Origin: Macrostomum hystrix
Lineage: Eukaryota; Animalia; Platyhelminthes
Direction: 5' to 3'
NCBI GenBank assembly: GCA_950097015.1
Contig: CATNEN010000013.1
Coordinates: forward strand, 186,001-250,000
Length of the DNA: 64,000 bases
Part shown: one piece after another, positions 21,612 through 48,748 of the stretch
Layout of the letters: each line of letters begins with the position of its first letter
Position numbering within the stretch: the stretch's first letter is position 1
Made by a program: the position numbers and the translations under genes
The notes under the pieces: model-generated
What the model saw: only the letters and a program-made list of their open reading frames with translations
Database searches by the model: none
What the model was told of the DNA's origin: nothing

Positions 21612-21674
21612 ATGCTGCAGTCTCGCTCAGCGGACCAGCCGCTGGTGGTGCTGGCGCCGCCTGACTCAAATCAC
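21612..21674 (+). CDS. PDE4: PDE4 alternative N-terminus A, exon A1
   Basis: ATG...MLQSRSADQPLVVLAPPDSNH, donor CAC|GTGAGT, phase 0, matching the acceptor at 22297. Confidence 0.65.
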
Positions 21675-22296
21675 GTGAGTCCCGCGCCCGATTCCTTGTC
21701 TGCATTTTACTCAAAGTTTTCCAACCGCCACGCCGGACTTGATTTTGTTCTGTCAAAGCCAATTCTGTCAAATTTTTCTGGCTTGTTAAGCCTCAATGCC
21801 TTTTGTTACTGGTGCACTCAAAAATTTCACGACTGATAAGTACAAAAGCTGTTATTAACTTTTATTCAACTAATTACATTTATACAGTATGTACATTTAT
21901 TTAGCGGCTGCGTACAGCCGTTCAATCCATGGACTGGACACTGCCCAGTTTACTATTTACGGAAACAATGCGCATATATATAATTTTTTCACCGTGATCA
22001 GTCCAAAACACTGACACCCCTCCTCATAAATATAAAATGTCTCTTCTCCATTTAAAATTATTGTCATTTTCTAAATTCTCATGTGAAATTTGCACACACG
22101 AAGCATTTTATTTTGCTATGTAAAAAGGTAGTAAAAATGTTAACATCTCTACTGATCTACGAGTAGATGAGTAGTGTGTTGCGCATTTCATGTGCCTTAG
22201 AAAAAATTGACATCTGTATTCCGGAAAGTAAGGTTAAAAAATTCATTTTCCTATCTCAATATTTATTAAGTTAAACGTTAAAAATCTCAAAATCAG

Positions 22297-22463
22297 GATC
22301 TACTGGCTCTGCCTGAGTCCAGTCTAAAGCAGCAGCAGCAGCAGCAGCAGAGGCGCCACTCGGATCACGCGCTGTACCGCAGGGCCAGGGACCAGCCAAT
22401 CAGAGGAGGCCTGGCCGTTAAGCTCCCGCAGATTTGCATCACCCTCAGCTGTAACAGCGACGG
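22297..22463 (+). CDS. PDE4: PDE4 alternative N-terminus A, exon A2
   Basis: Acceptor AATCAG|GAT; DLLALPESSLKQ7RRHSDHALYRRARDQPIRGGLAVKLPQICITLSCNSD; donor GG|GTGAGC, phase 2. Confidence 0.72.
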
Positions 22464-22547
22464 GTGAGCGAGCCCTCTAGACCATAAACTAATGTGGGAA
22501 TCAGGAATCGTGCGCTAGGGATATTTTCGAATGATGAGAATGAGATG

Positions 22548-23252
22548 GATGGGGAAGACAGTGTATTGGGAATACAGTGTATGGGGAAGACAATGAATGG
22601 GGAAGACAGTGTATTGGGAATACAGTGTATGGGGAAGACAATGTATTGGGAAGGGAGTGTATGGGGAAGACAGTGTATGGGGAAGACAATGTATTGGGAA
22701 GGGAGTGTATGGGGAAGACAGTGTATGGGGAAGACAGTGTATGGGGAATACAGTGTATGGGGAAGACAGTGTATGGGTAAAACAGTGTATGGGGAAGACA
22801 GTGTATTGGGAATACAGTGTATGGGGAAGACAGTGTATGGGGAAGACAGTGTATGGGTAAGACAGTGTATGGGTAAGACAGTGTATGGGTAAGACAGTTT
22901 ATGGGGAAGACAGTGTATGGGGAAGACAGTGTATGGGGAAGACAGTTTATGGGTAAGACAGTGTATGGGGAAGACAGTGTATTGGGAATACAGTGTATGG
23001 GGAAGACAGCGTATGGGGAAGACAGTTTATGGGGAAGACAGTGTATGGGGAAGACAGTGTATGGGGAATACAGTGTATGGGGAAGACAGTGTATGGGGAA
23101 GACAGTGGATGGGGAAGACAGTGGATGGGGAAGACAGTGTATGGGGAAGACAGTGTATGGGGAAGACAGTGGATGGGGAAGACAGTGGATGGGGAAGACA
23201 GTGTATGGGGAAGACAGTGTATGGGGAAGACAGTGTATGGGGAAGACAGTGG
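22548..23252. repeat. 16-bp minisatellite
   Basis: Unit GGGGAAGACAGTGTAT, about 44 copies. Confidence 0.96.
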
Positions 23253-23734
23253 ATCGGAAAGGGAATGAGAGATGTACTATCGTATGCTGTTAGAAAATAT
23301 TTCTGTAAGACGTCAGTCGCAGTCTTAACTCCTCAGCGCTCCTTAGCATTGTGGATAAGTCCTCCATATTTCATGAATCAAACTTCTGTCTGATAAAAAA
23401 CTTCGCCATCGCAACAAATTTAGATAAGCGATTGCTGAGAATAATCTTCTTGAATAATCGATTCTCGAACACCTTCGAAAGATGCATCAATAATTGATTG
23501 CACCAGCTGTGATTTCTATTTGGAAATATTTCAGATAGCGCTGAGATTGGCCCTCACAGTCCACAAACATCTGAGTGTGCTCTAGCATTTGTGCTTAAAA
23601 TTACTTCAAACGGTCCAGCTAAATTTAGTGCTGATATCCGTGCTGTATGCTACCCGAGACATCGGGGGTTCGAATCTTAGTTCGAGTCTCAAATCTCAGA
23701 CATTTCGATGCGCCCCACAATAGTCATCGGCTAA

Positions 23735-24040
23735 ATCCTCAGCTCTGACACCATCCTCAGCTCTGACACCATCCTCAGCTCTGACACCATCCTCAGCTCT
23801 GACACCATCCTCAGCTCTGACACCCTCTTCAGCTCTGACACCATCCTCAGCTCTGACACCATCTTCAGCTCTGACACCAGTTCTGACAACATTATCAGCT
23901 CTGACACCATCCTCAGCTCTGACACCATCCTCAGCTCTGACACCATCCTCAGCACTGACACCAGTTCTGACACCATCCTCAGCTCTGACACCAGTTCTGA
24001 CACCATCCTCAGCTCTGACACCAGTTCTGACACCATTATC
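23735..24040. repeat. 18-bp minisatellite
   Basis: Unit ATCCTCAGCTCTGACACC with a CAGTTCTGACAC variant. Confidence 0.93.
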
Positions 24041-24688
24041 AGCGACGGCATCAGTGCTGACAGCTGCACTTTTTGTCATTGATTCGGTTCTGAGTTGTAG
24101 GGCAAGTGGTGTGCTCAATACAAAAATAGGTTAGCTCCATTGCACCAGACTCAAAGAGTTTTTCATGCCGGGAGATGGCAAGTCAGCTGGGAGTCTGTGG
24201 AAACTGTAGCTAGCTCATTACCGAGCCGGGGCCAGAAACTTGCAGAGATGCGCAAGAAGACTGCCGGAGCCTTTTTCGAGTGTCCGGAGCACCTTCCTCA
24301 CAGGAGCACCCACCCCGAACCATACTCCACAATATCTCTCCCCTCGTCTCTCTTCCCGAGTGCGGAGAGCGCGCTTCGTTAAAGCCTGTACTGCGAATTG
24401 CTGCCGCATATCCTACTATGGGAACTATGGGCATCGGCGAATTGGGAGCGAGCTTCCAACTGTTACTATTTGGATTGGGAAAACTTGAAATTATTTCTAT
24501 ACACAGAGAGACTAAGGATAGCTAAACCCAGTCGTCAAAGAGTCACTCATTGGCTGCTTCGAGACTGAAGAAATTAAATTGCTTTCATAGAAAACAATTC
24601 TGCTAGATAAAGCCGCTGAGAAGAAAAAGGCAGATTCAGAAATTTCCAGAGCTAGCTAGATAGATAACCAGGTGAGGCCAATTGAGAA

Positions 24689-24727
24689 ATGTCTCTTGAA
24701 CAGCAGCAGCCGCACCTGTGGACTCGT

Positions 24728-24781
<54 letters not shown>

Positions 24782-25038
24782 CTACCGCCGCCGATTATGC
24801 TTAACAATTGTGGCCTCTGTGAAAGGTGCCAGTGTTGCATCTATGGCAGTGGCGGCGGAGGCGGAGGCGGAGGCGGCGGCGGCAGCGGTGCCAGTCGGCA
24901 TTTCTCGCACAGCGACGCCGAGGTTTGGCGCAAACGGCGCAACCTGCTGCGAATCTCTAAGTCCGACTGCTCAACCGCGCAACAGACCGGTGTTGCTAGG
25001 GGCTACCGTTATTGCCCAGCTAAAAGCTTCAGCTCCGC
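24689..25038 (+). CDS. PDE4: PDE4 alternative first exon B (polyQ, Cys cluster, polyG)
   Basis: ATG at 24689, open for 116 codons plus 2 nt, consensus donor GC|GTGAGT, phase 2. Confidence 0.72.
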
Positions 25039-25126
25039 GTGAGTAGCTACGAATTGGTGTGCAGCAGCCAGGTGAATTCTCGGCCGTTTGTCAGGTTTCT
25101 TATAAAATCCGGCTGCTATCGATTCT

Positions 25127-28100
25127 TTCGATTGGAAAACTACCCCCCTCACTTCTTTTGATTGGAAAACTACCCCCCTCACTTCTTTTGATTGGAAAAC
25201 TACCCCCCTCACTTCTTTTGATTGGAAAACTACCCCCCTCACTTCTTTTGATTGGAAAACTACCCGTCACTTCTTTTGATTGGAAAACTACCCCCCTCAC
25301 TTCTTTTGATTGGAAAACTACCCGTCACTTCTTTTGATTGGAAAACTACCCCCCTCACTTCTTTTGATTGGAAAACTACCCCCCTCACTTCTTTTGATTG
25401 GAAAACTACCCGTCACTTCTTTTGATTGGAAAACTACCCCCCTCACTTCTTTTGATTGGAAAACTACCCCCCTCACTTCTTTTGATTGGAAAACTACCAC
25501 TCAGTTCTTTTTATTAGAAAACTACCCCTCGGTTCCTTCGATTGGAAAACTGCTCTTGAGTTCTTTTTATTAGAAAACTACCCCTCGGTTCCTTCGATTA
25601 GAAAACTGCCCTCAGTTCCTTCGATTGGAAAACTACCCCTTAGTTCCTTCGATTGGAAAACTACCCTCAGTTCCTTCGATTGGAAAACTACCCCTCAGTT
25701 CTTTTGATTGGAAAACTACCCGTCACTTCTTTTGATTGGAAAACTACCCCTCACTTCTTTTGATTGGAAAACTACCACTCAGTTCTTTTTATTAGAAAAC
25801 TACCCCTCGGTTCCTTCGATTGGAAAACTGCTCTTGAGTTCTTTTTATTAGAAAACTACCCCTCGGTTCCTTCGATTAGAAAACTGCCCTCAGTTCCTTC
25901 GATTGGAAAACTACCCCTTAGTTCCTTCGATTGGAAAACTACCCTCAGTTCCTTCGATTGGAAAACTACCCCTCAGTTCTTTTGATTGGAAAACTACCCG
26001 TCACTTCTTTTGATTGGAAAACTACCCCTCACTTCTTTTGATTGGAAAACTACCACTCAGTTCTTTTTATTAGAAAACTACCCCTCGGTTCCTTCGATTG
26101 GAAAACTGCTCTTGAGTTCTTTTTATTAGAAAACTACCCCTCGGTTCCTTCGATTAGAAAACTGCCCTCAGTTCCTTCGATTGGAAAACTACCCCGTAGT
26201 TCCTTCGATTGGAAAACTACCCTCAGTTCCTTCGATTGGAAAACTACCCCTCAGTTCTTTTGATTGGGTAACTGCTCTTGAGTTCTTTTTATTAGAAAAC
26301 TACCCCTTAGTTCCTTCAATTGGAAAACTACCCTCAGTTCCTTCAATTGGAAAACTACCCCTCAGTTCCTTCGATTGGAAAACTACCCCTCAGTTCCTTC
26401 GATTGGAAAACTACCCCTCAGTTCCTTCGATTGGAAAACTACCCCTTAGTTCCTTCGATTGGAAAACTACCCTCAGTTCCTTCGATTGGAAAACTACCCC
26501 TCAGTTCTTTTGATTGGGTAACTGCTCTTGAGTTCCTTTTATTAGAAAACTACCCCTTAGTTCCTTCAATTGGAAAACTACCCTCAGTTCCTTCAATTGG
26601 AAAACTACCCCTCAGTTCCTTCGATTGGAAAACTACCCCTCAGTTCTTTTTATTAGAAAACTACCCCTCGGTTCCTTCGATTGGAAAACTGCTCTTGAGT
26701 TCTTTTTATTAGAAAACTACCCCTCGGTTCCTTCGATTAGAAAACTGCCCTCAGTTCCTTCGATTGGAAAACTACCCCTTAGTTCCTTCGATTGGAAAAC
26801 TACCCTCAGTTCCTTCGATTGGAAAACTACCCCTCAGTTCTTTTGATTGGGTAACTGCTCTTGAGTTCTTTTTATTAGAAAACTACCCCTCAGTTCCTTC
26901 GATTGGAAAACTACCCTCAGTTCCTTCAATTGGAAAACTACCCCTCAGTTCCTTCGATTGGAAAACTACCCCTCAGTTCCTTCGATTGGAAAACTACCCC
27001 TTAGTTCCTTCGATTGGAAAACTACCCCTTAGTTCCTTCGATTGGAAAACTACCCTCAGTTCCTTCGATTGGAAAACTACCCCTCAGTTCTTTTGATTGG
27101 GTAACTGCTCTTGAGTTCTTTTTATTAGAAAACTACCCCTTAGTTCCTTCAATTGGAAAACTACCCTCAGTTCCTTCAATTGGAAAACTACCCCTCAGTT
27201 CTTTTTATTAGAAAACTACCCCTCGGTTCCTTCGATTGGAAAACTGCTCTTGAGTTCTTTTTATTAGAAAACTACCCCTCGGTTCCTTCGATTAGAAAAC
27301 TGCCCTCAGTTCCTTCGATTGGAAAACTACCCCGTAGTTCCTTCGATTGGAAAACTACCCTCAGTTCCTTCGATTGGAAAACTACCCCTCAGTTCTTTTG
27401 ATTGGGTAACTGCTCTTGAGTTCTTTTTATTAGAAAACTACCCCTTAGTTCCTTCAATTGGAAAACTACCCTCAGTTCCTTCAATTGGAAAACTACCCCT
27501 CAGTTCCTTCGATTGGAAAACTACCCCTCAGTTCCTTCGATTGGAAAACTACCCCTCAGTTCCTTCGATTGGAAAACTACCCCTTAGTTCCTTCGATTGG
27601 AAAACTACCCTCAGTTCCTTCGATTGGAAAACTACCCCTCAGTTCTTTTGATTGGGTAACTGCTCTTGAGTTCCTTTTATTAGAAAACTACCCCTTAGTT
27701 CCTTCAATTGGAAAACTACCCTCAGTTCCTTCAATTGGAAAACTACCCCTCAGTTCCTTCGATTGGAAAACTACCCCTCAGTTCTTTTTATTAGAAAACT
27801 ACCCCTCGGTTCCTTCGATTGGAAAACTGCTCTTGAGTTCTTTTTATTAGAAAACTACCCCTCGGTTCCTTCGATTAGAAAACTGCCCTCAGTTCCTTCG
27901 ATTGGAAAACTACCCCTTAGTTCCTTCGATTGGAAAACTACCCTCAGTTCCTTCGATTGGAAAACTACCCCTCAGTTCTTTTGATTGGGTAACTGCTCTT
28001 GAGTTCTTTTTATTAGAAAACTACCCCTCAGTTCCTTCGATTGGAAAACTACCCTCAGTTCCTTCAATTGGAAAACTACCCCTCAGTTCCTTCGATTGGA

Positions 28101-29860
28101 AAACTACCCCTCAGTTCCTTCGATTGGAAAACTACCCCTTAGTTCCTTCGATTGGAAAACTACCCCTTAGTTCCTTCGATTGGAAAACTACCCTCAGTTC
28201 CTTCGATTGGAAAACTACCCCTCAGTTCTTTTGATTGGGTAACTGCTCTTGAGTTCTTTTTATTAGAAAACTACCCCTTAGTTCCTTCAATTGGAAAACT
28301 ACCCTCAGTTCCTTCAATTGGAAAACTACCCCTCAGTTCTTTTTATTAGAAAACTACCCCTCGGTTCCTTCGATTGGAAAACTGCTCTTGAGTTCTTTTT
28401 ATTAGAAAACTACCCCTCGGTTCCTTCGATTAGAAAACTGCCCTCAGTTCCTTCGATTGGAAAACTACCCCGTAGTTCCTTCGATTGGAAAACTACCCTC
28501 AGTTCCTTCGATTGGAAAACTACCCCTCAGTTCTTTTGATTGGGTAACTGCTCTTGAGTTCTTTTTATTAGAAAACTACCCCTTAGTTCCTTCAATTGGA
28601 AAACTACCCTCAGTTCCTTCAATTGGAAAACTACCCCTCAGTTCCTTCGATTGGAAAACTACCCCTCAGTTCCTTCGATTGGAAAACTACCCCTTAGTTC
28701 CTTCGATTGGAAAACTACCCCTTAGTTCCTTCGATTGGAAAACTACCCTCAGTTCCTTCGATTGGAAAACTACCCCTCAGTTCTTTTGATTGGGTAACTG
28801 CTCTTGAGTTCTTTTTATTAGAAAACTACCCCTTAGTTCCTTCAATTGGAAAACTACCCTCAGTTCCTTCAATTGGAAAACTACCCCTCAGTTCCTTCGA
28901 TTGGAAAACTACCCCTCAGTTCTTTTTATTAGAAAACTACCCCTCGGTTCCTTCGATTGGAAAACTGCTCTTGAGTTCCTTTTATTAGAAAACTACCCCT
29001 CGGTTCCTTCGATTAGAAAACTGCCCTCAGTTCCTTCGTTTCGAAAACTACCCCTTAGTTCCTTCGATTGGAAAACTACCCTCAGTTCCTTCGATTGGAA
29101 AACTACCCCTCAGTTCTTTTGATTGGGTAACTGCTCTTGAGTTCTTTTTATTAGAAAACTACCCCTTAGTTCCTTCGATTGGAAAACTACCCTCAGTTCC
29201 TTCGATTGGAAAACTACCCCTCAGTTCTTTTGATTGGGTAACTGCTCTTGAGTTCTTTTTATTAGAAAACTACCCCTTAGTTCCTTCAATTGGAAAACTA
29301 CCCCTCAGTTCCTTCGATTGGAAAACTACCCCTCAGTTCTTTTTATTAGAAAACTACCCCTCGGTTCCTTCGATTGGAAAACTGCTCTTGAGTTCTTTTT
29401 ATTAGAAAACTACCCCTCAGTTCCTTCGATTGGAAAACTACCCCTCAGTTCCTTCGATTGGAAAACTACCCCTCAGTTCCTTCGATTGGAAAACTACCCC
29501 TTAGTTCCTTCGATTGGAAAACTACCCTCAGTTCCTTCGATTGGAAAACTACCCCTCAGTTCTTTTGATTGGGTAACTGCTCTTGAGTTCTTTTTATTAG
29601 AAAACTACCCCTTAGTTCCTTCGATTGGAAAAATACCCCTCAGTTCCTTCAATTGGAAAACTACCCCTCAGTTCCTTCAATTGGAAAACTACCCCTCAGT
29701 TCCTTCAATTGGAAAACTACCCCTCATTTCCTTCGATTGGAAAACTACCCCTCAGTTCCTTCGATTCGAAAACTACCCCTCGGTTTATTAGAAAGCTACC
29801 CGTCACTTCTTTTGATCGGAAAACTACCCCTCAGTTCGATCGATTCGAAAACTGCCCCTT
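25127..29860. repeat. 4.7-kb satellite array, 27-30-bp monomer with higher-order periods of 278 and 1138 bp
   Basis: Monomer TTGGAAAACTACCCCTCAGTTCCTTCGA; matching off-frame ORFs recur at 25486/25764/26042 and at 26181/27319/28457. Confidence 0.96.
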
Positions 29861-31138
29861 TATCATTTTTTGCAAGCATCACGAAAGCACTACTATGAGT
29901 AACAAGTAGGGTGTTTTTTCATAAATATAGTTATAGCTCCGATCATTAAAAAATAATTGGATGTGTTTCATTTTAAGGGAGAGAAAAATCCTTTTGAACT
30001 CAGTCATATGCCTTAATAGTATCGACAGCATTGCATTAGTAAGCTCAGTTCCTCCAAGCTCTCATTGTGGGTATTTTCATTGAACAAGTTGAAAAAGTTT
30101 CCCAAGTTAATTAACTAGCCAACTTGACAAAAAGGCTAATTTCATAGTCCACAATACAGGGAGTGGAGAAGCCAATTTTCAACAGGTACTTGTTGGCTTA
30201 TAACACCTGTCCCACTGTTTTCAAAAGCCTTACATCGATCTTTCATCAAACTGACCACTTTTCTTACTGCCTTTGTTTCTTCTGTACCCAACGCAGCCAT
30301 TGCACTCTCATCTGTTTTGCGCCAGTTTTTTGTTGCTATGGGTTTTGTTTCATAAAAGTACATTCGGCATCAAGAATACGGCAAAAAGACAGCCCGGAAG
30401 TCAAGCAAAGCCAAAGTGGTTTGGACCTGTGTACCATTGGAGTGGTCGTGGGCAGTATGTCAGGTAAAAATACGTAATATTTTCCATCAACTATCATTGC
30501 TTTGTGCCATGCCTCTACAGATCGAACACTCAATCTTCTAGCTGCCGTTCCATCCCCTACCCAATAATATCCCAGTCCTAACAATCCTTATTTTAGTCTG
30601 CTTTTTTTTCATTCGGTGTGTCCGTCCCTCACGAGCACAGACAGCTCAGCGATAATTGATGAGACCGGCAACTCACTGCGGTCTCCTAGGAGTCCTCTGT
30701 TGATTATCCTTCTCTTCTTGCCGGCTTTACTTCAAAGATAGTAGAGAGGCTACTGGGAAGAAAATGTACTTGTGTTAAAGACACTCGATCCGTGCAGCCA
30801 CTACCCCTTAAACAGGTCTCCGCCCAAAAACTCTCAACCGATCGAACCACTAGGCGTGCATGCCGTGCACTTCTAACGCGGGAGGCTGTCTGGACTTTTC
30901 TTTGTCTCTTGAAGTCCGCAATGAAAACAATAGTTGACGAAAAAACATGCTCAAACAAAATTTGAATGTTTTAGCATGTAAAACATGTTTAGCATGTTTA
31001 GTCTCAAATGGAGTACGGTTGAGACTAAATTATCAAACACCGGTTGAGACTAAAGGATAATCACAAGTTAATGCTAAATTATGAAACACCAGTTGAGGCT
31101 TGAATGATCAAAAGGTAGGGAAAGCATAAAAAATATAG

Positions 31139-31700
31139 ACTGTAGGGATTGCTGTAAGGATTGCTGTAGGCATTGCTGTAAGGATTGCTGTAGGGATAGC
31201 TGTAGGGATTGCTGTAGGGATTGCTGTAGGTATTGCTGTAGGGATTGCTGTAGGGATTGCTGTTGGGATTGCTGTAGGGATTGCTGTAGGCATTGCTGTA
31301 GGCATTTGTTGGGATTGCTGTAGGGATTGCTGTAGGCATTGCTGTAAGGATTGCTGTAGGGATTGCTGTAGGGATTGCTGTTGGGATTGCTGTAGGTATT
31401 GCTGTAGGCATTCCTGTAGGGATTGCTGTAGGGATTGCTGTAGGGATTGCTGTAGGGATTGCTGTTGGGATTGCTGTAGGCATTGCTGTAGGCATTTGTT
31501 GGGATTGCTGTAGGGATTGCTGTAGGGATTGCTGTTGGGATTGCTGTTGTGATTGCTGTAGGGATTGCTGTTGGGATTGCTGTAAGGATAGCCGTAGGCA
31601 TTGCTGTTGGGATTGCTGTAGGGATTGCTGTTGGGATTGCTGTTGTGATTGCTGTAGGGATTGCTGTAGGGATTGCTGTTGGGATTGCTGTATGCATTCC
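31139..31700. repeat. 12-bp minisatellite
   Basis: Unit GCTGTAGGGATT. Confidence 0.95.
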
Positions 31701-32458: not shown

Positions 32459-32580
32459 ATGGCCCGCCTGCAGGTGCCGACTCTGCTGGTTAGTCAGCAG
32501 GAGGAGGAGAGCTTCGGCGATCTCGGCGAATTGCGCAACTTCTCAGCCAGGCACCGCTGCCGAAGGCACACCCTGGCGAT
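32459..32580 (+). CDS. PDE4: PDE4 alternative first exon C
   Basis: In-frame stop just upstream, then ATG; MARLQVPTLLVSQQEEESFGDLGELRNFSARHRCRRHTLA; donor AT|GTGAGT, phase 2. Below the ORF-track cutoff. Confidence 0.72.
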
Positions 32581-32684
32581 GTGAGTGGGGTTGAGGCTTG
32601 AGTTGCCCGGAAGTTACATCTGAATGCTGCGTGGACTGTGGTAACGACACAATCACCCATAATTCTGAGCAGAAGTAATGAGAT

Positions 32685-32950
32685 CTTGCTGAGGCTGTTG
32701 GGCGTTGGACTCTCGACTTGAAGGTCGGGGGTTCGATTCCAGACTTAATTTATGTCCTTTAGCGAGACACTTAACTCTGCATTGCTTTAGTTCACCCAGC
32801 TCTTGAATGGGTACCAAAATTAGCTGGGGTAATTAATGGTGGGTGTGACGTCATCCCATGCAGTCCACCTTCATGTGGCCGAATCGGAACCGGTGTAATC
32901 AATAATTATTCATTATTATTCATATTATCATTATTCATTTATTCATATAA
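32685..32950 (+). mobile_element. SINE family B (CORE-like), near full length
   Basis: tRNA-like head (GGGGGTTCGATTCC), GACACTTAACTCTGCATTGCTTTAGTTCACCCAGCT...AATGGGTACC core, ATT-rich tail. Confidence 0.82.
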
Positions 32951-33696: not shown

Positions 33697-34668
33697 TTGA
33701 AAAACTATTCAGTTGGTGCACAGCCACCTCACTCCAACTCCTTCCGCTCCACTCTTTCAGTGAACAGCCACCTCACTCCAACTCCTTCCTCTCCACTCTT
33801 TCAGTGAACAGCCACCTCACTCCAACTCCTTTCTCTTCACTCCTTCAATGAACAGCCAGCTCACTCCAACTCCTTTCTCTTCACTCCTTCAATGAACAGC
33901 CAGCTCACTCCAACTCCTTTCTCTTCACTCCTTCAATGAACAGCCACCTCACTCCAACCCCTTTCTCTCCACTCTTTCAATGACCAGCCACCTCACTCCA
34001 ACTGCTTCCTCTCCACTCTTTCAATGAACAGCCACTTCGCTCCAACTGCTTCCTCTCCACTCTTTCAATGAACAGCCACCTCACTCCAACTCCTTCCTCT
34101 CCACTCTTTCAGTGAACAGCCACCTCACTCCAACTCCTTCCTCTCCACTCTTTCAGTGAACAGCCACCTCACTCCAACTCCTTCCTCTCCTCTCTTTCAA
34201 TGAACAGCCACCTCACTCCGACCCCTTACTCCCAGCTCGCTCCAACTCCTTCCTCTCCACTCTTTCAGTGAACAGCCACCTCACTCCAACTCCTTTCTCT
34301 TCACTCCTTCAATGAACAGCCACCTCACTCCAACTGCTTCCTCTCCACTCTTTCAATGAACAGCCACCTCACTCCAACCCCTTTCTCTCCACTCTTTCAA
34401 TGACCAGCCACCTCACTCCAACTGCTTCCTCTCCACTCTTTCAATGACCAGCCACCTCACTCCAACTCCTTTCTCTCCACTCTTTCAGTGAACAGCCACC
34501 TCACTCCAACTCCTTCCTCTCCACTCTTTCAGTGAACAGCCACCTCACTCCAACTCCTTCCTCTCCTCTCTTTCAATGAACAGCCACCTCACTCCAACTC
34601 CTTCCTCTCCTCTCTTTCAATGAACAGCCACCTCACTCCGACCCCTTACTCCCAGCTCGCTCCAACTC
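33697..34668 (+). repeat. 44-bp minisatellite, about 21 copies, with a unique head sequence
   Basis: Unit AACAGCCACCTCACTCCAACTCCTTCCTCTCCACTCTTTCAGTG preceded by TTGAAAAACTATTCAGTTGGTGCAC. Confidence 0.95.
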
Positions 34669-35666: not shown

Positions 35667-35800
35667 ATGCAAGCAAAAAACAAGCGCGTCTCCATAGACT
35701 GCAGCATAGCAACGCATCGAGAGATTCGAGGGTGTGCCAGCAGCAGCAGCGGCAGCGGCGGCAAGCTGCTAGCCAGACTGAGCCGCAGATCCCTGCCAAA
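35667..35800 (+). CDS. PDE4: PDE4 alternative first exon D
   Basis: MQAKNKRVSIDCSIATHREIRGCASSSSGSGGKLLARLSRRSLP; donor AA|GTGAGT, phase 2. Below the ORF-track cutoff. Confidence 0.68.
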
Positions 35801-35871
35801 GTGAGTCTCTCTATTGAAAGCTAATTACAGAGGATTATATTTCTTCAGTTGTGTTACAATCGATTCGGGGG

Positions 35872-37868: not shown

Positions 37869-38023
37869 ATGTTGCAGGTGCCGACACTACAGGAGGCGAT
37901 TGCAGTGCAGGACGCCAGGTGTCAGCGCGTCCGTTTTGACACGATGCCATCTGGAGCCTGCAAACACGGAGGCAAACACGGAGGCATAGACCTTTTGTAC
38001 AGAAGGCATTCCTGTAACACTTG
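37869..38023 (+). CDS. PDE4: PDE4 alternative first exon E
   Basis: MLQVPTLQEAIAVQDARCQRVRFDTMPSGACKHGGKHGGIDLLYRRHSCNT; donor TG|GTGAGT, phase 2; the spliced junction RRHSCNTC-FDENAG resembles vertebrate PDE4D3 RRHSWIC-FDVDNG (recalled). Confidence 0.75.
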
Positions 38024-38070
38024 GTGAGTTGCATCGCGGATCGCATCAAAGTCTTTAGAATAATTCTTAT

Positions 38071-38314
38071 GTTCATTGAAGGAGTGAAGAGAAAGGAGTT
38101 GGAGTGAGGTGGCTGTTCACTGAAAGAGTGGAGAGAAAGGGGTTGGAGTGAGGTGGCTGTTCACTGAAAGAGTGGAGAGGAAGGAGTTGGAGTGAGGTGG
38201 CTGTTCACTGAAAGAGCGGAGAGAAATGAGTTGGAGTGAGGTGGCTGGTCACTGAAAGAGTGGAGAGGAAGGAGTTGGAGTGAGGTGGCTGTGCACCAAC
38301 TCGTAGTTTTTCAA
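38071..38314 (-). repeat. Inverted copy of the 44-bp minisatellite, about 5 units, with the same head
   Basis: GGAGTTGGAGTGAGGTGGCTGTTCACTGAAAGAGTGGAGAG units ending GTGCACCAACTCGTAGTTTTTCAA. Confidence 0.92.
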
Positions 38315-39176
38315 AGTACATTAGATTATCGGTTTAACTTTAACTGACCAATTCTCTTATTCCAATGTACATTAGATTATATGTTTCGTTTCAACTGATG
38401 AATTCTCTTACCCCTATGTACATTAGATTATCTGGTTCATTTCTACTGACGAATTCTTTCGTCTGACGAACTGACGAAACAAAAATATTTTTTTAACCCC
38501 AATGTTCACCATTCGATTCTTTATCCCATTAAATAATTTAACCCTGTGTGCTTTAACTTCTTCTGACAAAAGAATTGCATAGATGAGCAATCTGAGCATA
38601 AAGTTGTTTGCATACGAGATCGTTTGCATCATATTTTCGAGGCAATCACATGATTAAAAGCTTTGAAAAAAATTTTCGTAAACGAGTGACTGCTATAGAA
38701 GTTACTTCCAGTAAAAACTATAAACTTACAATCTTACAAAGAAGAGGCAATCATTACACTGTTTCCATGGGAACAGCAGCCTTTTTTAGTATTTTTCTAG
38801 TTGATCCCAACCAACTTCCTATTCTACTAGCTCAACAATCTATAGCTTCCATTCTCATTCTCACTGCTCGCTCTTTCACGAAATCTGTTTCCTTCTCCCA
38901 ACTTTCGGTGTTACATTTCGCTGGCCTCAGCTGTAATAGTTCCTTAGTATCCCTAGAAGTCATCCCTTAACTAAGTCCGGTCCAACTGCACTCCAAACCG
39001 CGGTCGACTGCAACTTTCTCGCTGCCCAATCTTTCTCTTATAAATTTCTCCCTCTCTATTAGCCAGCCCGGGACCTGTCCTATGGCCTAGGGAGGGGGAG
39101 GTGGTGTAGAAACAGCGCTGAGTGCATTCAGACATGGCGAAATCGTGCCCCCATGTGACTCCGGCACAGCTCTCTC

Positions 39177-39185
39177 TATATAAAA
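39177..39185 (+). promoter_or_regulatory. TATA box upstream of exon F
   Basis: TATATAAAA about 105 nt before the ATG at 39291. Confidence 0.5.
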
Positions 39186-39290
39186 TGCTGCTTAAATAGC
39201 GTTGCCGTTTGTTACAGCCAGAGTAGGAAGAGAAATAGCGAGTGTGACAGCTAGCGATAGTGTGCTCAAGCCAGTTGATTTCGCCATCAA

Positions 39291-39442
39291 ATGAGAGCCG
39301 CACCGGCCAGTCAGCAGCCGAGGACACGTCGGCATCCGCAGGCGGCGGTCTACCTGCACTCACGCAGCGTGTCGGCGCCGAACGCAGGACTCGCTGGCGT
39401 ACGCGGCGGCATGCGCCTGTCTTTACTGAGCACCTTGGCCAG
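39291..39442 (+). CDS. PDE4: PDE4 alternative first exon F
   Basis: MRAAPASQQPRTRRHPQAAVYLHSRSVSAPNAGLAGVRGGMRLSLLSTLA; donor AG|GTGACC, phase 2; GC-rich island in an AT-rich context. Confidence 0.62.
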
Positions 39443-39491
39443 GTGACCACGCGAACTGTAGTATATTATAGCATTCTAGTACAAGGATTGT

Positions 39492-39900
39492 TTGGATTCC
39501 AGTTAGGATTCCCCAGAATAGTATAATGATTCCCCAGAATAATGTTAGGATTCCCCAGAATTATAATAGGATTCCCCAGAATAGTATTAGGATTCTCCAG
39601 AATAGTATTAGGATTCCCCAGAATAATGTTAGGATTCCCCAGAATAGTATTAGGATTCCCCAGAATTATATTAGGATTCCCCAGAATTATATTAGGATTC
39701 CCCAGAATTTTATTAGGATTTCCCAGAATTATATTAGAATTTCCCAGAATAGTATTAGGATTCCCCAGAATTATATTAGGATTTTCCAGAATTATATTAG
39801 GATTTCCCAGAATCATATTAGGATTTCCCAGAATCATATTAGGATTCTACAGAAAAATATTTGAAGTCCCCAGAATTATATCAGGATTCCCCAAAGTCAT
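39492..39900. repeat. 21-bp minisatellite
   Basis: Unit CCCCAGAATAGTATTAGGATT and variants. Confidence 0.94.
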
Positions 39901-40521
39901 GGTTTGTTTGTTTTCTATTTCAATTTGTTCAGCTAGCTGTCTCATCCCATCACATGAGTCCACAATTCAATCGGTAAATTGATTTACTGCTGTTTCAAAG
40001 GAAATGTTCTTTGATGAATTCACATGCAATACTGATAATTAAAAAGTGCAGTGCAAGGTTCTCAGTCACGTGACCCAATACATCTGATGCATACAGATGT
40101 ATGCCTAAGTAGTCTGCCTAAGTAATGAGTTGTAGACTTGTCACATGTCAAAGCTCGGATACAATTGAGATCTCGCATCTTTCACTAAATAATAATCAGT
40201 TTTCTAATTATAGAAGTGGGATTTTTCTCCCCCGTCACATCCGCTTGGTCACCAAGTGATAATTAATTTTCCTTCTGTAGCGTGGCGGGACCAGGCAACC
40301 ACCCCCGCTGAGACAACAGGTTGGATGCAGTGAGATTAGACTCAAATATTCGCCTATCTATGCTCAGACTGTCTATTTCTTGTTCCTCATCCCAAATTTC
40401 CTCTCTCCAATGGGCCGAGTGGCTATCCAATTAAGCACGGGGATGGCTCGGGAATGACAGCTTCTCCTTCTCGGCTCTCCAGTTCGCCCCATAATTTTTT
40501 TCAACCGAGGAAATCCATCGC

Positions 40522-40529
40522 TATAAATA
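40522..40529 (+). promoter_or_regulatory. TATA box upstream of exon G
   Basis: TATAAATA about 80 nt before the ATG at 40610. Confidence 0.5.
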
Positions 40530-40609
40530 TAAGTGGACAATCGAGAAGGCCATTGCGAGTTTCTCTGAGCACTAAAGTGAAAGTGAAAGTCGTTAAAAAC
40601 TGATTCGAT

Positions 40610-40797
40610 ATGGAGTCCGGCCGTCAGGAACTTCGACGACTGCCAACATCAGTCTCCGCACAGGCCAACGGCAGCCGGTGGACGCAGCGGCGGCACTCGC
40701 TGCTGCGGGCCAACAGCTCGGCGACGCCCCAGACTGCTGGAAGGCGCAATTTTATTCACGCCCGCCTGGTGAAGGGATTCTGGAAGAGAACTACGAG
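40610..40797 (+). CDS. PDE4: PDE4 alternative first exon G
   Basis: MESGRQELRRLP...QRRHSLLR...FWKRTT; donor AG|GTACTG, phase 2. Confidence 0.62.
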
Positions 40798-41286
40798 GTA
40801 CTGCTGGGGGATCTCAGTGTTTGTCCTCATTTTTTCCCATTGCGCGGGAAAACAAATGGAGATTCGTTAATAGCTATAGAATATTTCTCATTAGTTAATG
40901 CCAGCAGCATATGCGCTTCAAGTCCCAATGCGGCACTGGGGATATGTGGCGATGGTAAATAGCTAAAATAGAATGCGAGAGGAATCCGTGACGGAATTCA
41001 GGCCTTCTAAATTGGCCCCCCGAGGCTAATGTGGGCCGGCCTGTTGTTAACAAGCCAACAGCCAGCCGATGCCCATGCAGGGCAGGGGGCTGTTTCCAGC
41101 CCGAAAGAAAGGGAAGAGTAAGTCACTAGTTGGGCTGCTCAACTCTTCGGAGGTCCTAATAAGTTTAGACTGGGCGGGAAAAATATACCTCATTCATTCC
41201 CCATTTGACGGAACCGCATCGAGCTAACTAGCGCGCCGCTTCCGTCTATGGCAAGCAGCAGCCAATCACAGCGAATGAAGTAGATT

Positions 41287-41585
41287 GTAGCCATAGGGTT
41301 AGAGCGACGGACTCACGGAGGTTGTCGCTATAAAGGTCGGGAGTTCAAATCTTTGACTTCGCAGAAAAGTTGTGCCTTTTTAAAAAGAGAAAGTTGCTTC
41401 AGTTCACCCAGCTGTTCAATGGGTACCAGCATCATTTGGGGTAATTGAGGGGTGTGGCGTCCCCCCAGTCCATGGACTGAACAGCCGTACACAGCTTTCA
41501 GATGCACCGCGCAATAGCTGCCGCTGTGTAGAGTTGTCGGCTGCACATCTGGTCCAATTGGGGCAGGTGTAATCAGTTATTATTT
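41287..41585 (+). mobile_element. SINE family B copy
   Basis: Head, GCTTCAGTTCACCCAGCTGTTCAATGGGTACC core, GGTGTAATCA-TTATTA end. Confidence 0.8.
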
Positions 41586-41599
41586 ACTTACGGAGAGGA

Positions 41600-41926
41600 T
41601 TAGTGGCAGAGCGTTTGACTCTCCCGCCAATGTCCCTGAGCTCGATTCCGGGGTCACATTCATTTAGGGAGCAGCCGCTGAGAGAAGGTTTGAAGGCTTG
41701 TGGAATTTTCGCCCTCGTGGGCCAACCTCCAAGGCACAGTGAGAGTGTACACTGCCTGACGATGAGAAAGTCAGGCCAGATGTACACACCTGTGTGAACG
41801 TGTGCCTGCGTACGGTATCTGTGTACGTGTGTGCACAGGAGCCAGCGAAATGGGCAGAATTGCCTCCTCGCTGGCTGCGGGTCTAGTGTCACCATACGAT
41901 CAGCCATTGCCCGCAGCCCTCCTGCA

Positions 41927-41980
<54 letters not shown>
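41600..41980 (+). mobile_element. SINE family A copy with a long (ATT)n tail
   Basis: Aligns by eye with 35872-36240; about 17 ATT units. Confidence 0.9.
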
Positions 41981-41984
<4 letters not shown>

Positions 41985-43229
41985 AGGGAGCCTAAAGCCC
42001 AGAGCTTCCGACTTCTATTCGAGAGGTCGAGAGTTCGAATCTTAGCCCAAGGTAAGGATTCGAACTCTTTACCAAGGGGTCCTCCAGCAAAAAACTTTAT
42101 ATCTAATGGCTTCAGTTCCCCAAAAGTGAAATACTCGTAGTGTAGAGTTTTGGTTGAGAATGGCGGCCTTCTAGGTCCATGATTAGGTGGAATATTTATT
42201 TATCTATCTTGCTTCCGTGAAAATCGTTAGCCAATCACAATGAAGCTTCATTCCTAAGTATTTTTCTAGGGTTTTTTGTTAAAAGAGACTTCTTATGTTG
42301 GCTGAAAGAAGATGTGCAACAGTCTCATGTTATTTTCCTTTTTCGACGCTCTGAAAGAAAAATTAGCAGCAGCAGCATGGCTAATCGAGACTATTCCGCT
42401 AGTCTTGATCAATTATGAACCTCTTTGACTGCTCATTATCTTCTTGTCTGGGGAGTTAGCAGTGGTTCATTTCTCAAAAAAATGTGATCAACTCAATTTT
42501 TGTACGCATCAATAATGCACGCATGAGTTGAAAGCGGCTTTTTTGGCCTCATCGGCCGAAGCTGGGACAGGCGGCGGGTCAGTGGGATCTTGTTAAACAA
42601 TCCCAATCGCCTCGAGTCCGTGTTGAACACACCAGCCTGACACTGCTCCATCTCCGGTTGCTAGACAACAAGAAATCCTAGAAATCCTTGGAATAAGAGT
42701 TGGAGATAGCGCAGCCTGTACTCAATATGCCTGCAGTCCAATCCAGTAGGCCTATGCGGACCTCAACTTTGCCTTGGGCCTCGCCGGCAGACTTTTCTTC
42801 AGCCATTCGCCACCTCCCTAAAAGTAAATTTTCAATCGAATCTTCTTTTCGTTCCTCCTATCTCTAGCCGCTTCTTCTTTCTCTCTCTTTCTCTCTCTCT
42901 CTCTAGCTGCTTGGTTCGCGGGCCCAGTGAAGGGATGAGATTCCGGCATGTTAAGGGTGGGATGGGATGGGGGCCGCTCGCACGGACGCAGAGGGGGGGG
43001 ATGGCTTCCGTTGCGAAGAAGGGGATCTACATAATGGCACTAAATAGAGCCCGGCATGCCAGTAGCTTGTCTTATCTCTCACAATTTCCAACTCTGGCGG
43101 CAGACTGAAAGTCTCTCACAATTTCCCCACCAAGCAATCTCGACAAGAAAAATCTGGGGCAGAAGAAGTTATTTAGTTTCTAAGCGCTTAAAATTGACCA
43201 ACTCGGACACGCTGGAGCAGCGGCTGACG

Positions 43230-43534
43230 ATGCAGAGCCTTCTGGCCAGCCTGCCAGAGCATCCCGCGGACCACCCGGCGCAGCTGGAGGAGTGGACCGA
43301 GACCGAGGAGCTGCCGCCGCAGGAGGAGATTCAATACGAGACGTCCGTGATTCCTACGCCCAATGGCGACATCACCGTTACAAAGAAGATCTTGAAGCGC
43401 CGCAGGGTGCGCATCATCAAGAATATGCAGAAGGGCTTCGTGCCGGCCTCCACCGTGCCATCGTCGGCTGGCAGCGGCGGCTCCGTGCTCACCAGCAGCA
43501 CCGTGAAGGTTACGAGGACGCGCCAGATGCTCGG
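43230..43534 (+). CDS. PDE4: PDE4 alternative first exon H (upstream in-frame ATG also at 43056)
   Basis: MQSLLASLPEHPADHPAQLEEWTETEELPPQEEIQY...KKILKRRRVRIIK...TRTRQML; strong coding-like codon usage; donor GG|GTGGGT, phase 2. Confidence 0.75.
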
Positions 43535-43583
43535 GTGGGTGCGCGCGGGGCTACATTCCAGGAGGCTTGGAACCCACTAGCTT

Positions 43584-43845
43584 ATAAAAATAAAATAAAA
43601 ATAAAAATAATTGCGGGCAATGGCACATCATTTGGTGACACTAGAACCGCAGCCAGCGAGGAGGCAATTCTGCTCATTTCGCTGACTCCTGAGCACACAC
43701 GCACAGATACTGTACGCAGGCATACGCTCACACAGGCGTGTACATCCGGCCTGACTTTCTCATCGTCAGGCAGTGTACAACTTCGAGCTCAGGGACCTTG
43801 GTGCGAGAGGCAAACACGTTAACCGCTCTACCGCCGACCCCCCTA
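43584..43845 (-). mobile_element. SINE family A copy with an internal deletion
   Basis: Reverse complement of the family A head and 3' body; the middle segment is absent. Confidence 0.82.
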
Positions 43846-44295
43846 CCCCATCAGCTTTGAGATCCTTTGAATCGAAGATTTTGCGTTTTGTGTTCTTAAG
43901 ATCTGAGACTAGAAATCTGACACTTTGTGCTCTGAGATGTTTTCGCTTGCAATTTTTGGATTGCATTTTGCTATCTGTGATTTGGGATCTGGGATTTTAG
44001 GACAAAGGACCATGGAGATTTCGCGATTTTAAACTTTAGCGATTCTGCATTTCCCATTTTGCATTTAGCAAAATCACACATGTGGTTACTTGATGTGGGA
44101 TTTTGCTAATCAAAAATTTGAACGATGGAACTTCAAGGATTTGGGATTTCGGTATCTGGGAGTTCCGAATATTGATTGGATTTCTGAGGATTTGGGATTT
44201 TTTGATGATCAAAGAACTTTGAGTCTGGGAGTTTGGGATTTTGAACTATAAGGATCTCGTATCGAGATGGAATTTAGCTTCACGTAATCGGGCAA

Positions 44296-45582
44296 TGATA
44301 TCTAGGATCTGGGATTCAGCGTCATGTAATCGGGCTATAATAATCTAGGATCTGGGATTCAGCGTCATGTAATCGGGCTATAATAATCTAGGATCTGGGA
44401 TTAAGCGTCATGTAATCGGGCAATAATAATCTAGGATCTGGGATTAAGCGTCATGTAATCGGGCAATGATAATCTAGGACCTGGGATTAAGCGTCATGTA
44501 ATCGGGCTATAATAATCTAGGATCTGGGATTCAGCGTCATGTAATCGGGCTATAATAATCTAGGATCTGGGATTCAGCGTCATGTAATCGGGCTATAATA
44601 ATCTAGGATCTGGGATTCAGCGTCATGTAATCGGGCTATAATAATCTAGGATCTGGGATTCAGCGTCATGTAATCGGGCAATAATAATCTAGGATCTGGG
44701 ATTCAGCGTCATGTAATCGGGCAATGATAATCTAGGATCTGGGATTCAGCGTCATGTAATCGGGCAATAATAATCTAGGATCTGGGATTCAGCGTCATGT
44801 AATCGGGCTATAATAATCTAGGATCTGGGATTCAGCGTCATGTAATCGGGCAATGATAATCTAGGATCTGGGATTCAGCGTCATGTAATCGGGCTATAAT
44901 AATCTAGGATCTGGGATTCAGCGTCATGTAATCGGGCAATGATAATCTAGGATCTGGGATTCAGCGTCATGTAATCGGGCAATAATAATCTAGGATCTGG
45001 GATTCAGCGTCATGTAATCGGGCTATAATAATCTAGGATCTGGGATTAAGCGTCATGTAATCGGGCTATAATAATCTAGGATCTGGGATTAAGCGTCATG
45101 TAATCGGGCAATGATAATCTAGGATCTGGGATTAAGCGTCATGTAATCGGGCAATGATAATCTAGGATCTGGGATTAAGCGTCATGTAATCGGGCAATAA
45201 TAATCTAGGATCTGGGATTCAGCGTCATGTAATCGGGCTATAATAATCTAGGATCTGGGATTAAGCGTCATGTAATCGGGCTATAATAATCTAGGATCTG
45301 GGATTAAGCGTCATGTAATCGGGCAATAATAATCTAGGATCTGGGATTAAGCGTCATGTAATCGGGCAATAATAATCTAGGATCTGGGATTAAGCGTCAT
45401 GTAATCGGGCTATAAAAATCTAGGATCTGGGATTAAGCGTCATGTAATCGGGCTATAATAATCTAGGATCTGGGATTCAGCGTCATGTAATCGGGCTATA
45501 ATAATCTAGGATCTGGGATTAAGCGTCATGTAATCGGGCTATAATAATCTAGGATCTGGGATTCAGCGTCATGTAATCGGGC
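44296..45582. repeat. 43-bp minisatellite, about 30 copies
   Basis: Unit CTAGGATCTGGGATTCAGCGTCATGTAATCGGGCTATAATAAT. Confidence 0.97.
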
Positions 45583-47504
45583 CCTCATATTTAGTGCATT
45601 AATTCGCAGGATTCAAAAAGGATTAGCGTTGAACTATTGTTGTTTTTGAACTATTCATTCCTTAGGGTGGATAGGGTGGAAAAAGAACAGTACAATGATC
45701 CACTTCCAGTTTATTCACGCGATGAAAATGAATGCAAAATACTGCTTCGGCAATTTCTGTTGCACTTCGCTAGCAAACCTCTCTCCCTCTCTCTTCGCTC
45801 TCGCTCATTCTCGCACTATCTGTCTTCCATTGCCCTTCCCAGCATGTCGAACTGCCCCCCCTAGCAGTGACATTTGCGCCAACGGCTAGGTCCAGTTCTA
45901 GCTAAGAATTGGTAGGGCTACGGCCTTACTCCCTCTCCATCACTTTCGCATCCCTTATATTTTCCCTTGGTCGACAGCTGCAGCGGAACTTGGCTTTAGT
46001 GCAGTATAATATAGGGTACAGATTGGTGCCTAGCAACTGTTGCTTCATATGGCTTTTCTTTGCACTTCGCGCAGAAACTTTACTCAGGCTCTGGAGTTGT
46101 GGTACTGATTAGACCATAACTAATACTCACCTTGTTTCTGAATTACCCCTGAAACCACGCGTGTCTATGCCAGCTCTGTCTCTCGGATCTCTATGTGATC
46201 GTCCCGAGGCGGTAACTAGTAGTTGGGATTTCGCCCGTGAATCAGAATGCCTAATTGGATTTGCTGGGCGCAGCGTGCAGACATGTCCACTCTCTGCTCT
46301 GTGCCCTTAGCATGCGGAAAGGATTTCATCAATCAGACTTACGCTCGTAACAAGCCTATAAATAATGCAATCTAGGCGCAAGACAAAGGCCAGATTAGAA
46401 GGATTATCCAGTGGTTTTTGGAGTAAAATTCATTACTAGCTCGTATAATGACATTCCTGCCATGCACCGCTTCTCTGGTACATTATAATGTCACACAATC
46501 ATACCTTCAGGAATTCCACCTCAGCATTCTAATTGGTTAAGACACGAAAATTTATTTCTCTGTTCTACCGCTGCTGACGCCCACCCCATGCGAGGCATTC
46601 TGATTGGCTAGGACCAATAGCATTCATTTTTTCCACTTTCAATAACACCAAACGCCAAGTGCACTGATTGCCCAAAGCTCGACGCTTAAACAAATATTCT
46701 ACCGCTTCTCGCACCCAACCCCATGCGAGGCGTTCTGATTGGCTAGAACTCAATGGTTAGATAATTATTTTATAACCCTATCGATCGTCAACCTTGCGTC
46801 AGTCATTATAATTGGCTAAGACTCGACAGGTAAAAACATCTTATTTTGCTCCAGTATTTTAGAAGTTTTAATTGGTTAGAACTCAAGTGTTAAAATTTTC
46901 CTTCTGACCCATTGGACGCCCACCTCACTCTACTTTGATCTCTTCTCTTTCCTTCTCCTCGATAAGGTTTAATGGCCAGGATGAAAATTTCTAAACTCAC
47001 TATCCCTTGGCATCGACTTCACGCCTCAGTCCAATCAGCTTCATTGGCGCATTCGCACATAGTCACGTGATGCAAAACAGACATTGAATTCCACTGGCTT
47101 TTTTAGGCCCAAAATTAGCTTGAATAAAACTCTGCCAAAAACTTGGCTGTCAACTGCAGCGACTCTCCTTTCGGCAATCGGCAGAAAAGGCTTGGCACAG
47201 GCCGCCTTTGATTGCCGCCTCATCAATTGGCTGCCACCGGGCCCTTGCATTTGCATAATCAAATGCGGGCATGCACCGGACCGACAAAGTTGAATATATA
47301 TTGAGTTTCAGGCCGGCCCAGGTCTGGCCAAATGGCGGCTAATTGCTGACAGGAATCCCTCCAAAGGCACTTTGACTAGCTGTCTTCATCTGCATTCGAT
47401 TGCTCATTAGCAAAATCCTACTCATCGGTTCTACTGGTTTATTGGGTTTTTTAAATGCGGGTTAATGGAGGTCAGCTTATTTATAAACAGGTTAGGACAG
47501 CTCG

Positions 47505-48550
47505 AGTCAATTTAGGTCAATTTGGTTCAGGTCATTTTAGGTCAATTTCGGTAGCTCGGGTGGGTATGTTTGGGTGGGTCAGTTTAGGTCAGTTTGGGTT
47601 AGTTTGGGTCAGTTTGGGTCAGTTTGTGTCAGTTTAGGTCAATTTTGGTCAGTTTGGGTCAGTTTCGGTTAGTTTGGGTCAGTTTAGGTCAGTTTAGGTT
47701 AGTTTAGGTCAGTTTAGGTCAGTTTGGGTCAGTTTGGGTCAGTTTAGGTCAGTTTAGGTCAATTTGGATTATTTTGTGTCAATTCAGTTCAGCTTGCGTT
47801 AGTTTGGGTCAGTTTAGGTCAGTTTGGGTCAGTTTGGGTCAGTTTGGGTCAGTTTAGGTCAGTTTAGGTCAATTTGGGTCAGTTTGGGTCAGTTTGGGTT
47901 AGTTTGGGTCATTTTGGGTCACTTTGGGTCAGTTTGGGTCAGTTTGGGTCAGTTTGGGTCAGTTTAGGTCAGTTTAGGTCAATTTGGGTCAGTTTGGGTC
48001 AGTTTGGGTTAGTTTGGGTCATTTTGGGTCACTTTGGGTCAGTTTGGGTTATTTTGGGTCAGTTTGGGTCAGTTTGGGTCAGTTTGGGTCAGTTTGGATC
48101 AGTTTGGGTCAGATTAGGTCAGTTTGGGTCAGTTTGGGTCAGTTTGGGTTAGTTTGGGTCAGTTTGGGTTAGCTTGTGTCAGTTTAGGTCAGTTTAGGTT
48201 AGTTTAGGCCAGTTTAGGTCAGTTTAGGTAATTTTAGGTTAGTTTAGGTCAGTCTGGGTCAGTTTGGGTCAGTTTCGGTCAGTTTGGGTCAGTTTGGGTC
48301 AGTTTGGGTCAGTTTGGGTCAGTTTAGGTCAGTTTGGGTCAGTTTGGGTCAGTTTGGGTTATTTTGTGTCAGTTCAGTTCAGTTTGGGTTATTTTGGGTC
48401 AGTTTAGGTCTGTTTAGTTCAGTTTGGGTCAGTTTGGGTCAGTTTGGGTTAGTTTATTTATAAATTAATATATATGGGTTTGGGTTTATTTGGGTCAGTT
48501 TGTGTCAGTTTGGGGTCAGTTTCGGGGTCAGTTTTGGTCTACTTGGGTCA
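47505..48550. repeat. 10-bp minisatellite, about 100 copies
   Basis: Unit AGTTTGGGTC / AGTTTAGGTC. Confidence 0.96.
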
Positions 48551-48583
48551 GTATTCAATAAGTTGCCTAATTTTGTCTCACAG

Positions 48584-48748
48584 CTTCGACGAAAACGCGG
48601 GCCACCGGCCAGACGGGCAGCCGGTGGGCAGCGGCCTGGTGCTTCAGCATTTGCCGCACCAGCGTCGCGAGTCCTTCCTCTACCGATCTGACTCCGACTT
48701 CGACGTGTCACCGAGGGCGTCGAGAAACTCCTCGCTAACAAGCGATTT
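48584..48748 (+). CDS. PDE4: PDE4 common exon, UCR1 N-part
   Basis: Acceptor CTCACAG|C (phase 2); FDENAG...[29 protein letters not shown] is the PDE4 UCR1 signature with the PKA site RRES; donor TT|GTGAGT. Confidence 0.95.

Follow-up and report, generated by a model that had tools for sequence, protein, structure and literature searches.

Results

A PDE4 gene with a shared UCR1 exon

The window analysed here is a stretch of 64,000 nucleotides from the flatworm Macrostomum hystrix (contig CATNEN010000013.1 of assembly GCA_950097015.1, positions 186,001 to 250,000; all coordinates below count from the first letter of the window). Its plus strand holds the 5' half of a gene for a cyclic AMP (cAMP) phosphodiesterase of the PDE4, or dunce, type. 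An earlier sequence-only reading had proposed that eight alternative N-terminal exon units, A to H, feed a single acceptor at 48584, where UCR1 begins. The conserved exons on which this proposal turns are the following (a slash marks the exon boundary).

48584-48748, plus strand: first UCR1 exon, called here the shared exon; phase-2 acceptor, phase-2 donor ttt/GTGAGT, protein kinase A (PKA) site RRESF.
53412-53528, plus strand: second UCR1 exon (HSDEIIVTPFAQVL...); phase-2 acceptor, match to PF18100 at 27.6 bits (cut-off 26.9).

Further downstream, an open reading frame (ORF) at 57122-57301 matches positions 48-89 of PF18100 (E 4e-13) and places UCR2 at about 57137-57270, while 60540-60947 matches PF00233 (E 1.7e-21), which is the first part of the PDEase_I catalytic domain and the only part within the window. 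A full search with the 54 residues of the shared exon returned 341 PDE4 matches, all of them at or below 83% identity. The presence of UCR1, UCR2 and PDEase_I supports the identity of the gene, and the PDE4 matches bear out the proposed UCR1 exon at 48584.

The acceptor AG of the shared exon lies at 48582-48583, and the first base of the exon (C) finishes a codon, so that the acceptor is in phase 2 and needs donors that leave two bases of a codon, as had been proposed. In many genomes the ORFs that read through this boundary carry S or R (AG plus one base) ahead of FD. The phase-2 acceptor is therefore ancestral, and a functional upstream exon of any animal must then end in phase 2. The N-termini of transcript type that we retrieved from Drosophila, Cherax, Pycnogonum, Ampulex, Cyamophila and vertebrates stop exactly at the FD(V/E)xNG boundary. 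These matches identify the 48584 exon as the one onto which the PDE4 N-termini of flies, crustaceans, sea spiders and vertebrates are joined.

Eight candidate N-terminal units

The coordinates of all eight units in the sequence-only reading are correct: each unit has an ATG, an open frame and a GT donor that splits a codon after its second base. In unit A the ATG is in the first of two exons, A1. Donor scores are in bits; LLR is the log-likelihood ratio of the codon-usage score and GC3 the GC content of third codon positions.

21612-21674, plus strand: unit A, exon 1 (A1); ATG, 21 codons, phase-0 donor cac/GTGAGT, 7.5 bits.
22297-22463, plus strand: unit A, exon 2 (A2); no ATG of its own, RRHS and PQICIT, phase-2 donor cgg/GTGAGC, 8.3 bits.
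24689-25038, plus strand: unit B; ATG, polyglutamine, Cys-rich CGLCERCQCC, polyglycine, phase-2 donor cgc/GTGAGT, 5.2 bits; LLR 44 bits.
32459-32580, plus strand: unit C; ATG, LQVPTL, RRHTLA at the end, phase-2 donor gat/GTGAGT, 7.9 bits.
35667-35800, plus strand: unit D; ATG, 44 codons, RLSRRSLP, phase-2 donor aaa/GTGAGT, 9.0 bits, the highest of all; LLR 17 bits.
37869-38023, plus strand: unit E; ATG, LQVPTL, YRRHSCNT plus TG at the end, phase-2 donor ttg/GTGAGT, 8.7 bits.
39291-39442, plus strand: unit F; ATG, 50 codons, RTRRHP, phase-2 donor cag/GTGACC, 6.6 bits; LLR 36 bits.
40610-40797, plus strand: unit G; TATAAATA at 40522, ATG, RRHS at 40688, claimed phase-2 donor gag/GTACTG.
43230-43534, plus strand: unit H; ATG, 101 codons, ELPPQEE..ETSVIPTPNGDITVT..KRRRVRIIKN, phase-2 donor cgg/GTGGGT, 7.3 bits; GC3 0.86, LLR 1.07 per codon.

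The GTGAGT donors that had been reported for B, C, D and E are present, and units C to F are indeed short: 41-52 codons separate the ATG of each from the following in-frame stop. When the C at 48584 is added, the junction codons of A to H read GGC, GCC, ATC, AAC, TGC, AGC, AGC and GGC, none of which is a stop. For A1 the codon LLR is 1.01 per codon and is highest in the claimed frame. The sole possible acceptor of A2 is the AG at 22295-6, which follows an in-frame stop at 22279-81, and A2 can be fed by a phase-0 partner only. The coding parts of the units do not overlap the interspersed repeats, and the only unit sequence that also matches elsewhere consists of CAG runs.

Coding signal and phase after a codon-usage filter

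The sequence-only reading had estimated that random phase would give the observed agreement with a probability of about (1/3)^8. This argument does not hold, as GT donors of every phase are plentiful and each unit ORF contains 1-7 GTs in phase 2. We enumerated ATG ORFs of at least 60 nt that end at donors of at least 5 bits, working from the donor side. Unfiltered, the region yields 21 candidates in phase 2, 16 in phase 0 and 14 in phase 1.

A codon-usage filter, whose score was trained on the window's remaining coding sequence, left 10 plus-strand candidates at eight loci vs a single minus-strand candidate. These loci are H, B, F, C, E and D, all six in phase 2, together with G and with A1, whose phase 0 is the one that A2 needs. 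Seven of the eight units have their strongest donor in phase 2 (binomial p = 0.0026), G being the exception, and the claimed frame is the highest in codon score and GC3 for every unit except B and G. The units are located in GC-rich islands (p = 9e-5). The phase and coding signal is real once the codon filter is applied: several ATG-bearing exons lie upstream of one shared exon in the phase of its acceptor, with the exception of G, whose sole phase-2 donor is weak.

Counterparts of the units in other animals

In a BLASTP comparison, unit C aligns with the segment of Drosophila yakuba dunce isoform B that directly precedes FDVENG (36% identity and 67% positives over 33 residues, E 6e-6), and the alignment stops at the same exon boundary in both. 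Unit C is homologous to the dunce segment preceding the shared exon.

Unit H has a counterpart in another organism, at 2200-2402 of a 9.4-kb genomic contig (L001; Logan run DRR639838, GC 0.35), with 48% identity. This exon begins with an ATG at 2200, contains the block ELPPEEEVRTETKVIPTEGGEITVT..KRRRRVRVMKN and ends at GG/GTAAGG in phase 2. It lies 3.1 kb upstream of the FDVENG exon of that contig (5495-5657; cag/C TTT GAC GTT GAG AAT GGA), and the junction codon, GGC, is identical to that of H here. A profile built from H and the L001 sequence found two more copies, the near-identical 68-residue proteins P0161 and P0162 (Logan, ENA data). A word search with H alone gave no match, and a search of the ESM Atlas with H gave no usable match.

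For unit E the resemblance is at the level of motifs. It shares LQVP...RRHS features with the N-terminus of the sea spider Pycnogonum litorale (KLQVPI...RRRHSWICG/FDVENG, in full MSDNKVAKLQVPIINLP...YPRRRHSWICG/FDVENG), and its junction codon TGC places a Cys before FD, resembling vertebrate matches that read ICFDVDNG. Among the other N-termini that end at the boundary, that of Drosophila dunce reads ...GSIGDLQKYHSRYLKNRRHTLANVR/FDVENG and that of Cherax quadricarinatus ...GPRRHS/FDVENG; two insect N-termini carry RRHS in the middle of the exon. N-terminal exons conserved across species at the same junction were thus found for C and H. Sequence comparison supports C and H as N-terminal types shared between species, and E at motif level; the three remaining loci searched (L002-L004) gave no counterpart of any unit.

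Short motifs in the units

The motif RRH[ST] is present in A2, C, E and G, and about three other occurrences lie outside repeats in the six frames of the 64 kb; the chance rate of a motif of the RRHS type is about 2 per 100,000 codons. Units C and E have LQVPTL in common (p 0.02). As further short candidate motifs, PQICIT of A2 (22420-22440) fits the PxIxIT pattern, and C and E begin with LQVP, which is LxVP-like.

One 44-bp minisatellite occurs downstream of C (33720-34651) and, inverted, at 38070-38296, 46 nt past the donor of E. Taken with LQVPTL and RRH[ST], it is possibly a trace of a duplication.

False RRHT matches come from a short interspersed repeat, one frame of which reads TVRRHTLTQ.CTSGLTFSSSG. 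Copies of this repeat, which resembles a short interspersed nuclear element, are found at 43715 and near 3591 on the plus strand and at 41810, 36101 and 61174 on the minus strand.

Predicted translation starts and a possible ninth start

In-frame stops lie 1-4 codons 5' of the ATG in units B, C, F and G, and the ATGs of these four units are therefore predicted to be translation starts; such stops do not prove separate transcription starts. The frame is open for 62 codons upstream of the ATG of H and for 34 codons upstream of that of E.

A further ATG ORF (MPRRCLLPLCCCCGLCCSQPRR..., with a polyglutamine run) occupies 52978-53528, where the GC content of the window is highest (0.56-0.60), and reads unspliced past the 53412 acceptor of the second UCR1 exon. 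It may be an additional start, one that does without the first UCR1 exon. An apparent similarity between unit B and this possible ninth start (Smith-Waterman score 95) was gone after masking of homopolymer runs.

Neighbouring genes and intron repeats

Below 16 kb the window contains genes unrelated to PDE4, namely a pair of hexokinase-like ORFs, an ORF of mucin-like repeats and a kinase of Src type. As these upstream genes are unrelated, the PDE4 gene plausibly has its first exon in unit A, at 21.6 kb.

The hexokinase-like ORFs (1085-2521, 478 residues, and 5160-6626, 488 residues) are tandem, intron-less, single-domain and nearly identical to each other, and their top database identity is about 40%, to vertebrate two-domain hexokinases; an exact look-up of the hexokinase-like sequence gave no match. 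The ORF at 8237-10132 encodes 631 residues, in which a Ser/Thr-rich unit (SGTGQTKSDSASKQHS) recurs about 25 times and a hydrophobic stretch lies near the C-terminus, and it looks mucin-like. Exons of a tyrosine kinase of Src-family type, with an MGC N-terminus, a Q-rich stretch and SH3, SH2 and kinase motifs recognised by eye, occupy 12371-15524 on the plus strand and end about 6 kb upstream of unit A.

Long minisatellites fill the introns of the PDE4 gene, at 25123-29859 (170 copies of a 28-bp unit), 44268-45582 (31 of 43 bp), 47575-48455 (88 of 10 bp) and 48815-50134 (36 of 37 bp). The first UCR1 exon lies between two of these arrays, which come within about 130 nt of it on the upstream side and about 70 nt on the downstream side.

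Discussion

A probable series of alternative 5' exons

The reading that we consider probable is that a series of alternative 5' exons feeds UCR1 of this PDE4 gene at 48584. Long-form mRNAs would begin at 5' exons that carry an ATG and are distributed over about 22 kb, and splicing would join the phase-2 donor of each unit to the ancestral shared exon, where UCR1 starts. The products would have an identical core of UCR1, UCR2 and catalytic domain and would differ in short N-terminal peptides. The units probably have their own promoters, and by analogy with mammalian PDE4 and fly dunce the peptides may guide the enzyme to distinct membranes or binding partners. The RRH[ST] motifs of units A, C, E and G may provide isoform-specific PKA-type sites like Ser13 of PDE4D3, and the Cys-rich stretch of B could serve as a lipid anchor. 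The analysis shows the identity of the gene, the anatomy and phases of its exons, their coding signal and the conservation of C and H; the splicing itself, separate promoters and the targeting function are inferred.

The units differ in how likely they are to be real 5' coding exons that feed UCR1. We are nearly certain of C and, by a hair less, of H; E is very probable and A is a good candidate. Unit B is rather likely, D somewhat likely and G slightly favoured, and for F the chances are even. All of the support for B, D and F is intrinsic to the locus. It is very probable that at least five of the units are real and improbable that all eight are.

Several observations weigh against the series as a whole or against single members. 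Phase 2 equally suits the acceptor at 53412: the shared exon is in phase 2 at both ends, the second UCR1 exon also fits phase-2 donors, and phase alone therefore cannot tie the units to 48584. Some units could skip 48584-48748 and join the second UCR1 exon in frame. As for promoters, the TATA boxes that had been noted for F and G are present as hexamers, before F at 39039 and 39177 and before G at 40522 (TATAAATA, 88 nt upstream of the ATG), but these three TATA-like hexamers in 8 x 400 nt are no enrichment over the 2.4 expected from the window background of 0.77 per kb. Nor is the observed/expected ratio of CpG at the units significantly elevated (p 0.07). The pyrimidine tract at the acceptor of A2 is poor, a CAG run blurs the frame preference of unit B, and unit F stands in a GC-rich stretch where several frames are open, including a minus-strand ORF of 159 residues. 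The claimed donor of G scores 3.6 bits, and a stronger phase-0 donor, ctg/GTGAAG, lies at 40769 (5.5 bits). Finally, A, B, D, F and G have no counterpart among the 150 best matches or at loci L001-L004, a result that carries little weight at such evolutionary distance.

In a reduced reading, only C, H, probably E and perhaps A are real, whereas the ATG ORFs of B, D, F and G arose by chance in GC-rich islands (promoters, enhancers or non-coding leader exons) and happen to meet a phase-2 GT. We consider it unlikely, though of some weight. The 21 phase-2 candidates found in the region ahead of the coding filter show how readily such ORFs could arise, and the missing homologues of these four units, the weak donor of G and the several open frames of F all fit it. 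However, B, D and F survive the codon filter in phase 2, against one minus-strand candidate, and the donor of D is the highest in the region. Unit G, for its part, has an RRHS, rare by chance, and the hexamer 88 nt 5' of its ATG.

A second alternative accepts the units as real coding exons and has them chosen by mutually exclusive splicing from one or a few upstream leader exons. That no promoter signal stands out agrees with it, as do the long open frames upstream of the ATGs of H and E and the position of the C-type segment in Drosophila isoform B, which is internal and follows about 500 residues. We hold this alternative to be very unlikely, since the stops just upstream mean that the ATGs of B, C, F and G must be translation starts, TATAAATA is well placed before G, the L001 counterpart of H likewise begins with ATG, and the isoforms of mouse Pde4d each use their own promoter (PMC7460819). 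The idea that the whole pattern is chance, with ORFs selected by eye and nothing real but the annotated UCR1 exon, can point to the invalid statistic of the sequence-only reading, but it has next to no standing, being contradicted already by the conservation of C and H across species and further by the 10 to 1 strand asymmetry and phase bias after the codon filter and by the enrichment of RRH[ST].

Comparison with known PDE4 genes

Contrary to what had been supposed, a series of alternative 5' exons would not make this an unusually large repertoire. Mouse Pde4d has 11 isoforms with a separate promoter for each (PMC7460819), and the dunce gene uses several promoters and makes at least eight transcripts, with N-termini of five classes (bioRxiv 10.64898/2025.11.29.691281). 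Many promoters or first exons, one core and N-terminal targeting are the textbook design of PDE4, already known in flies and mammals.

The locus is most like mammalian PDE4D (and PDE4A/B), where many ATG-bearing 5' exons are joined to one FD(V/E)xNG exon leading into UCR1, giving unique N-termini on a common core. In mammals, too, RRHS lies near the junction in one isoform type, PDE4D3, where phosphorylation of Ser13 strengthens the binding of mAKAP (PMC7770493). The two systems differ in that several N-termini here carry RRH[ST], whereas one does in mammals, and in that the battery here takes up about 27 kb of the one gene in view, with splicing and promoters deduced, compared with four mammalian paralogues. 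The mammalian PDE4D gene spans more than a megabase.

Like dunce, the gene is an invertebrate PDE4 orthologue, and unit C matches the dunce segment GSIGDLQKYHSRYLKNRRHTLANV directly before FDVENG. In D. yakuba isoform B, however, this segment is internal, behind a long N-terminal region, whereas in unit C an ATG comes before it and a stop lies two codons upstream of that ATG. Counterparts of H, D and F were not seen among the dunce proteins retrieved. The PDE4 of Aplysia (ApPDE4) is likewise an invertebrate PDE4 with isoforms, of which three have been cloned (PMC4580752), in contrast to the eight or nine candidate starts here; this comparison is one of numbers and not of sequences.

What appears mildly new is the compactness of the battery, about 27 kb, and the N-terminal exon types (C, H and perhaps E) shared by distant animals. 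The match of C to fly dunce and that of H to another invertebrate hint at N-terminal types far older than the vertebrate paralogues. Tentatively, and with more doubt than confidence, the N-terminal exons may be old orthologous families, the C type corresponding to the RRHTLA of dunce, the E type to the RRHSW of sea spider and vertebrate PDE4D3, and the H type occurring in at least one further invertebrate lineage. The PDE4 exon battery would in that case predate much of animal diversification and would be kept here in an unusually compact 27-kb form. If all units are used, this compact locus would be handy for studying how one PDE4 gene serves different cAMP compartments, and any one N-terminus could be tagged or deleted within a few kilobases.

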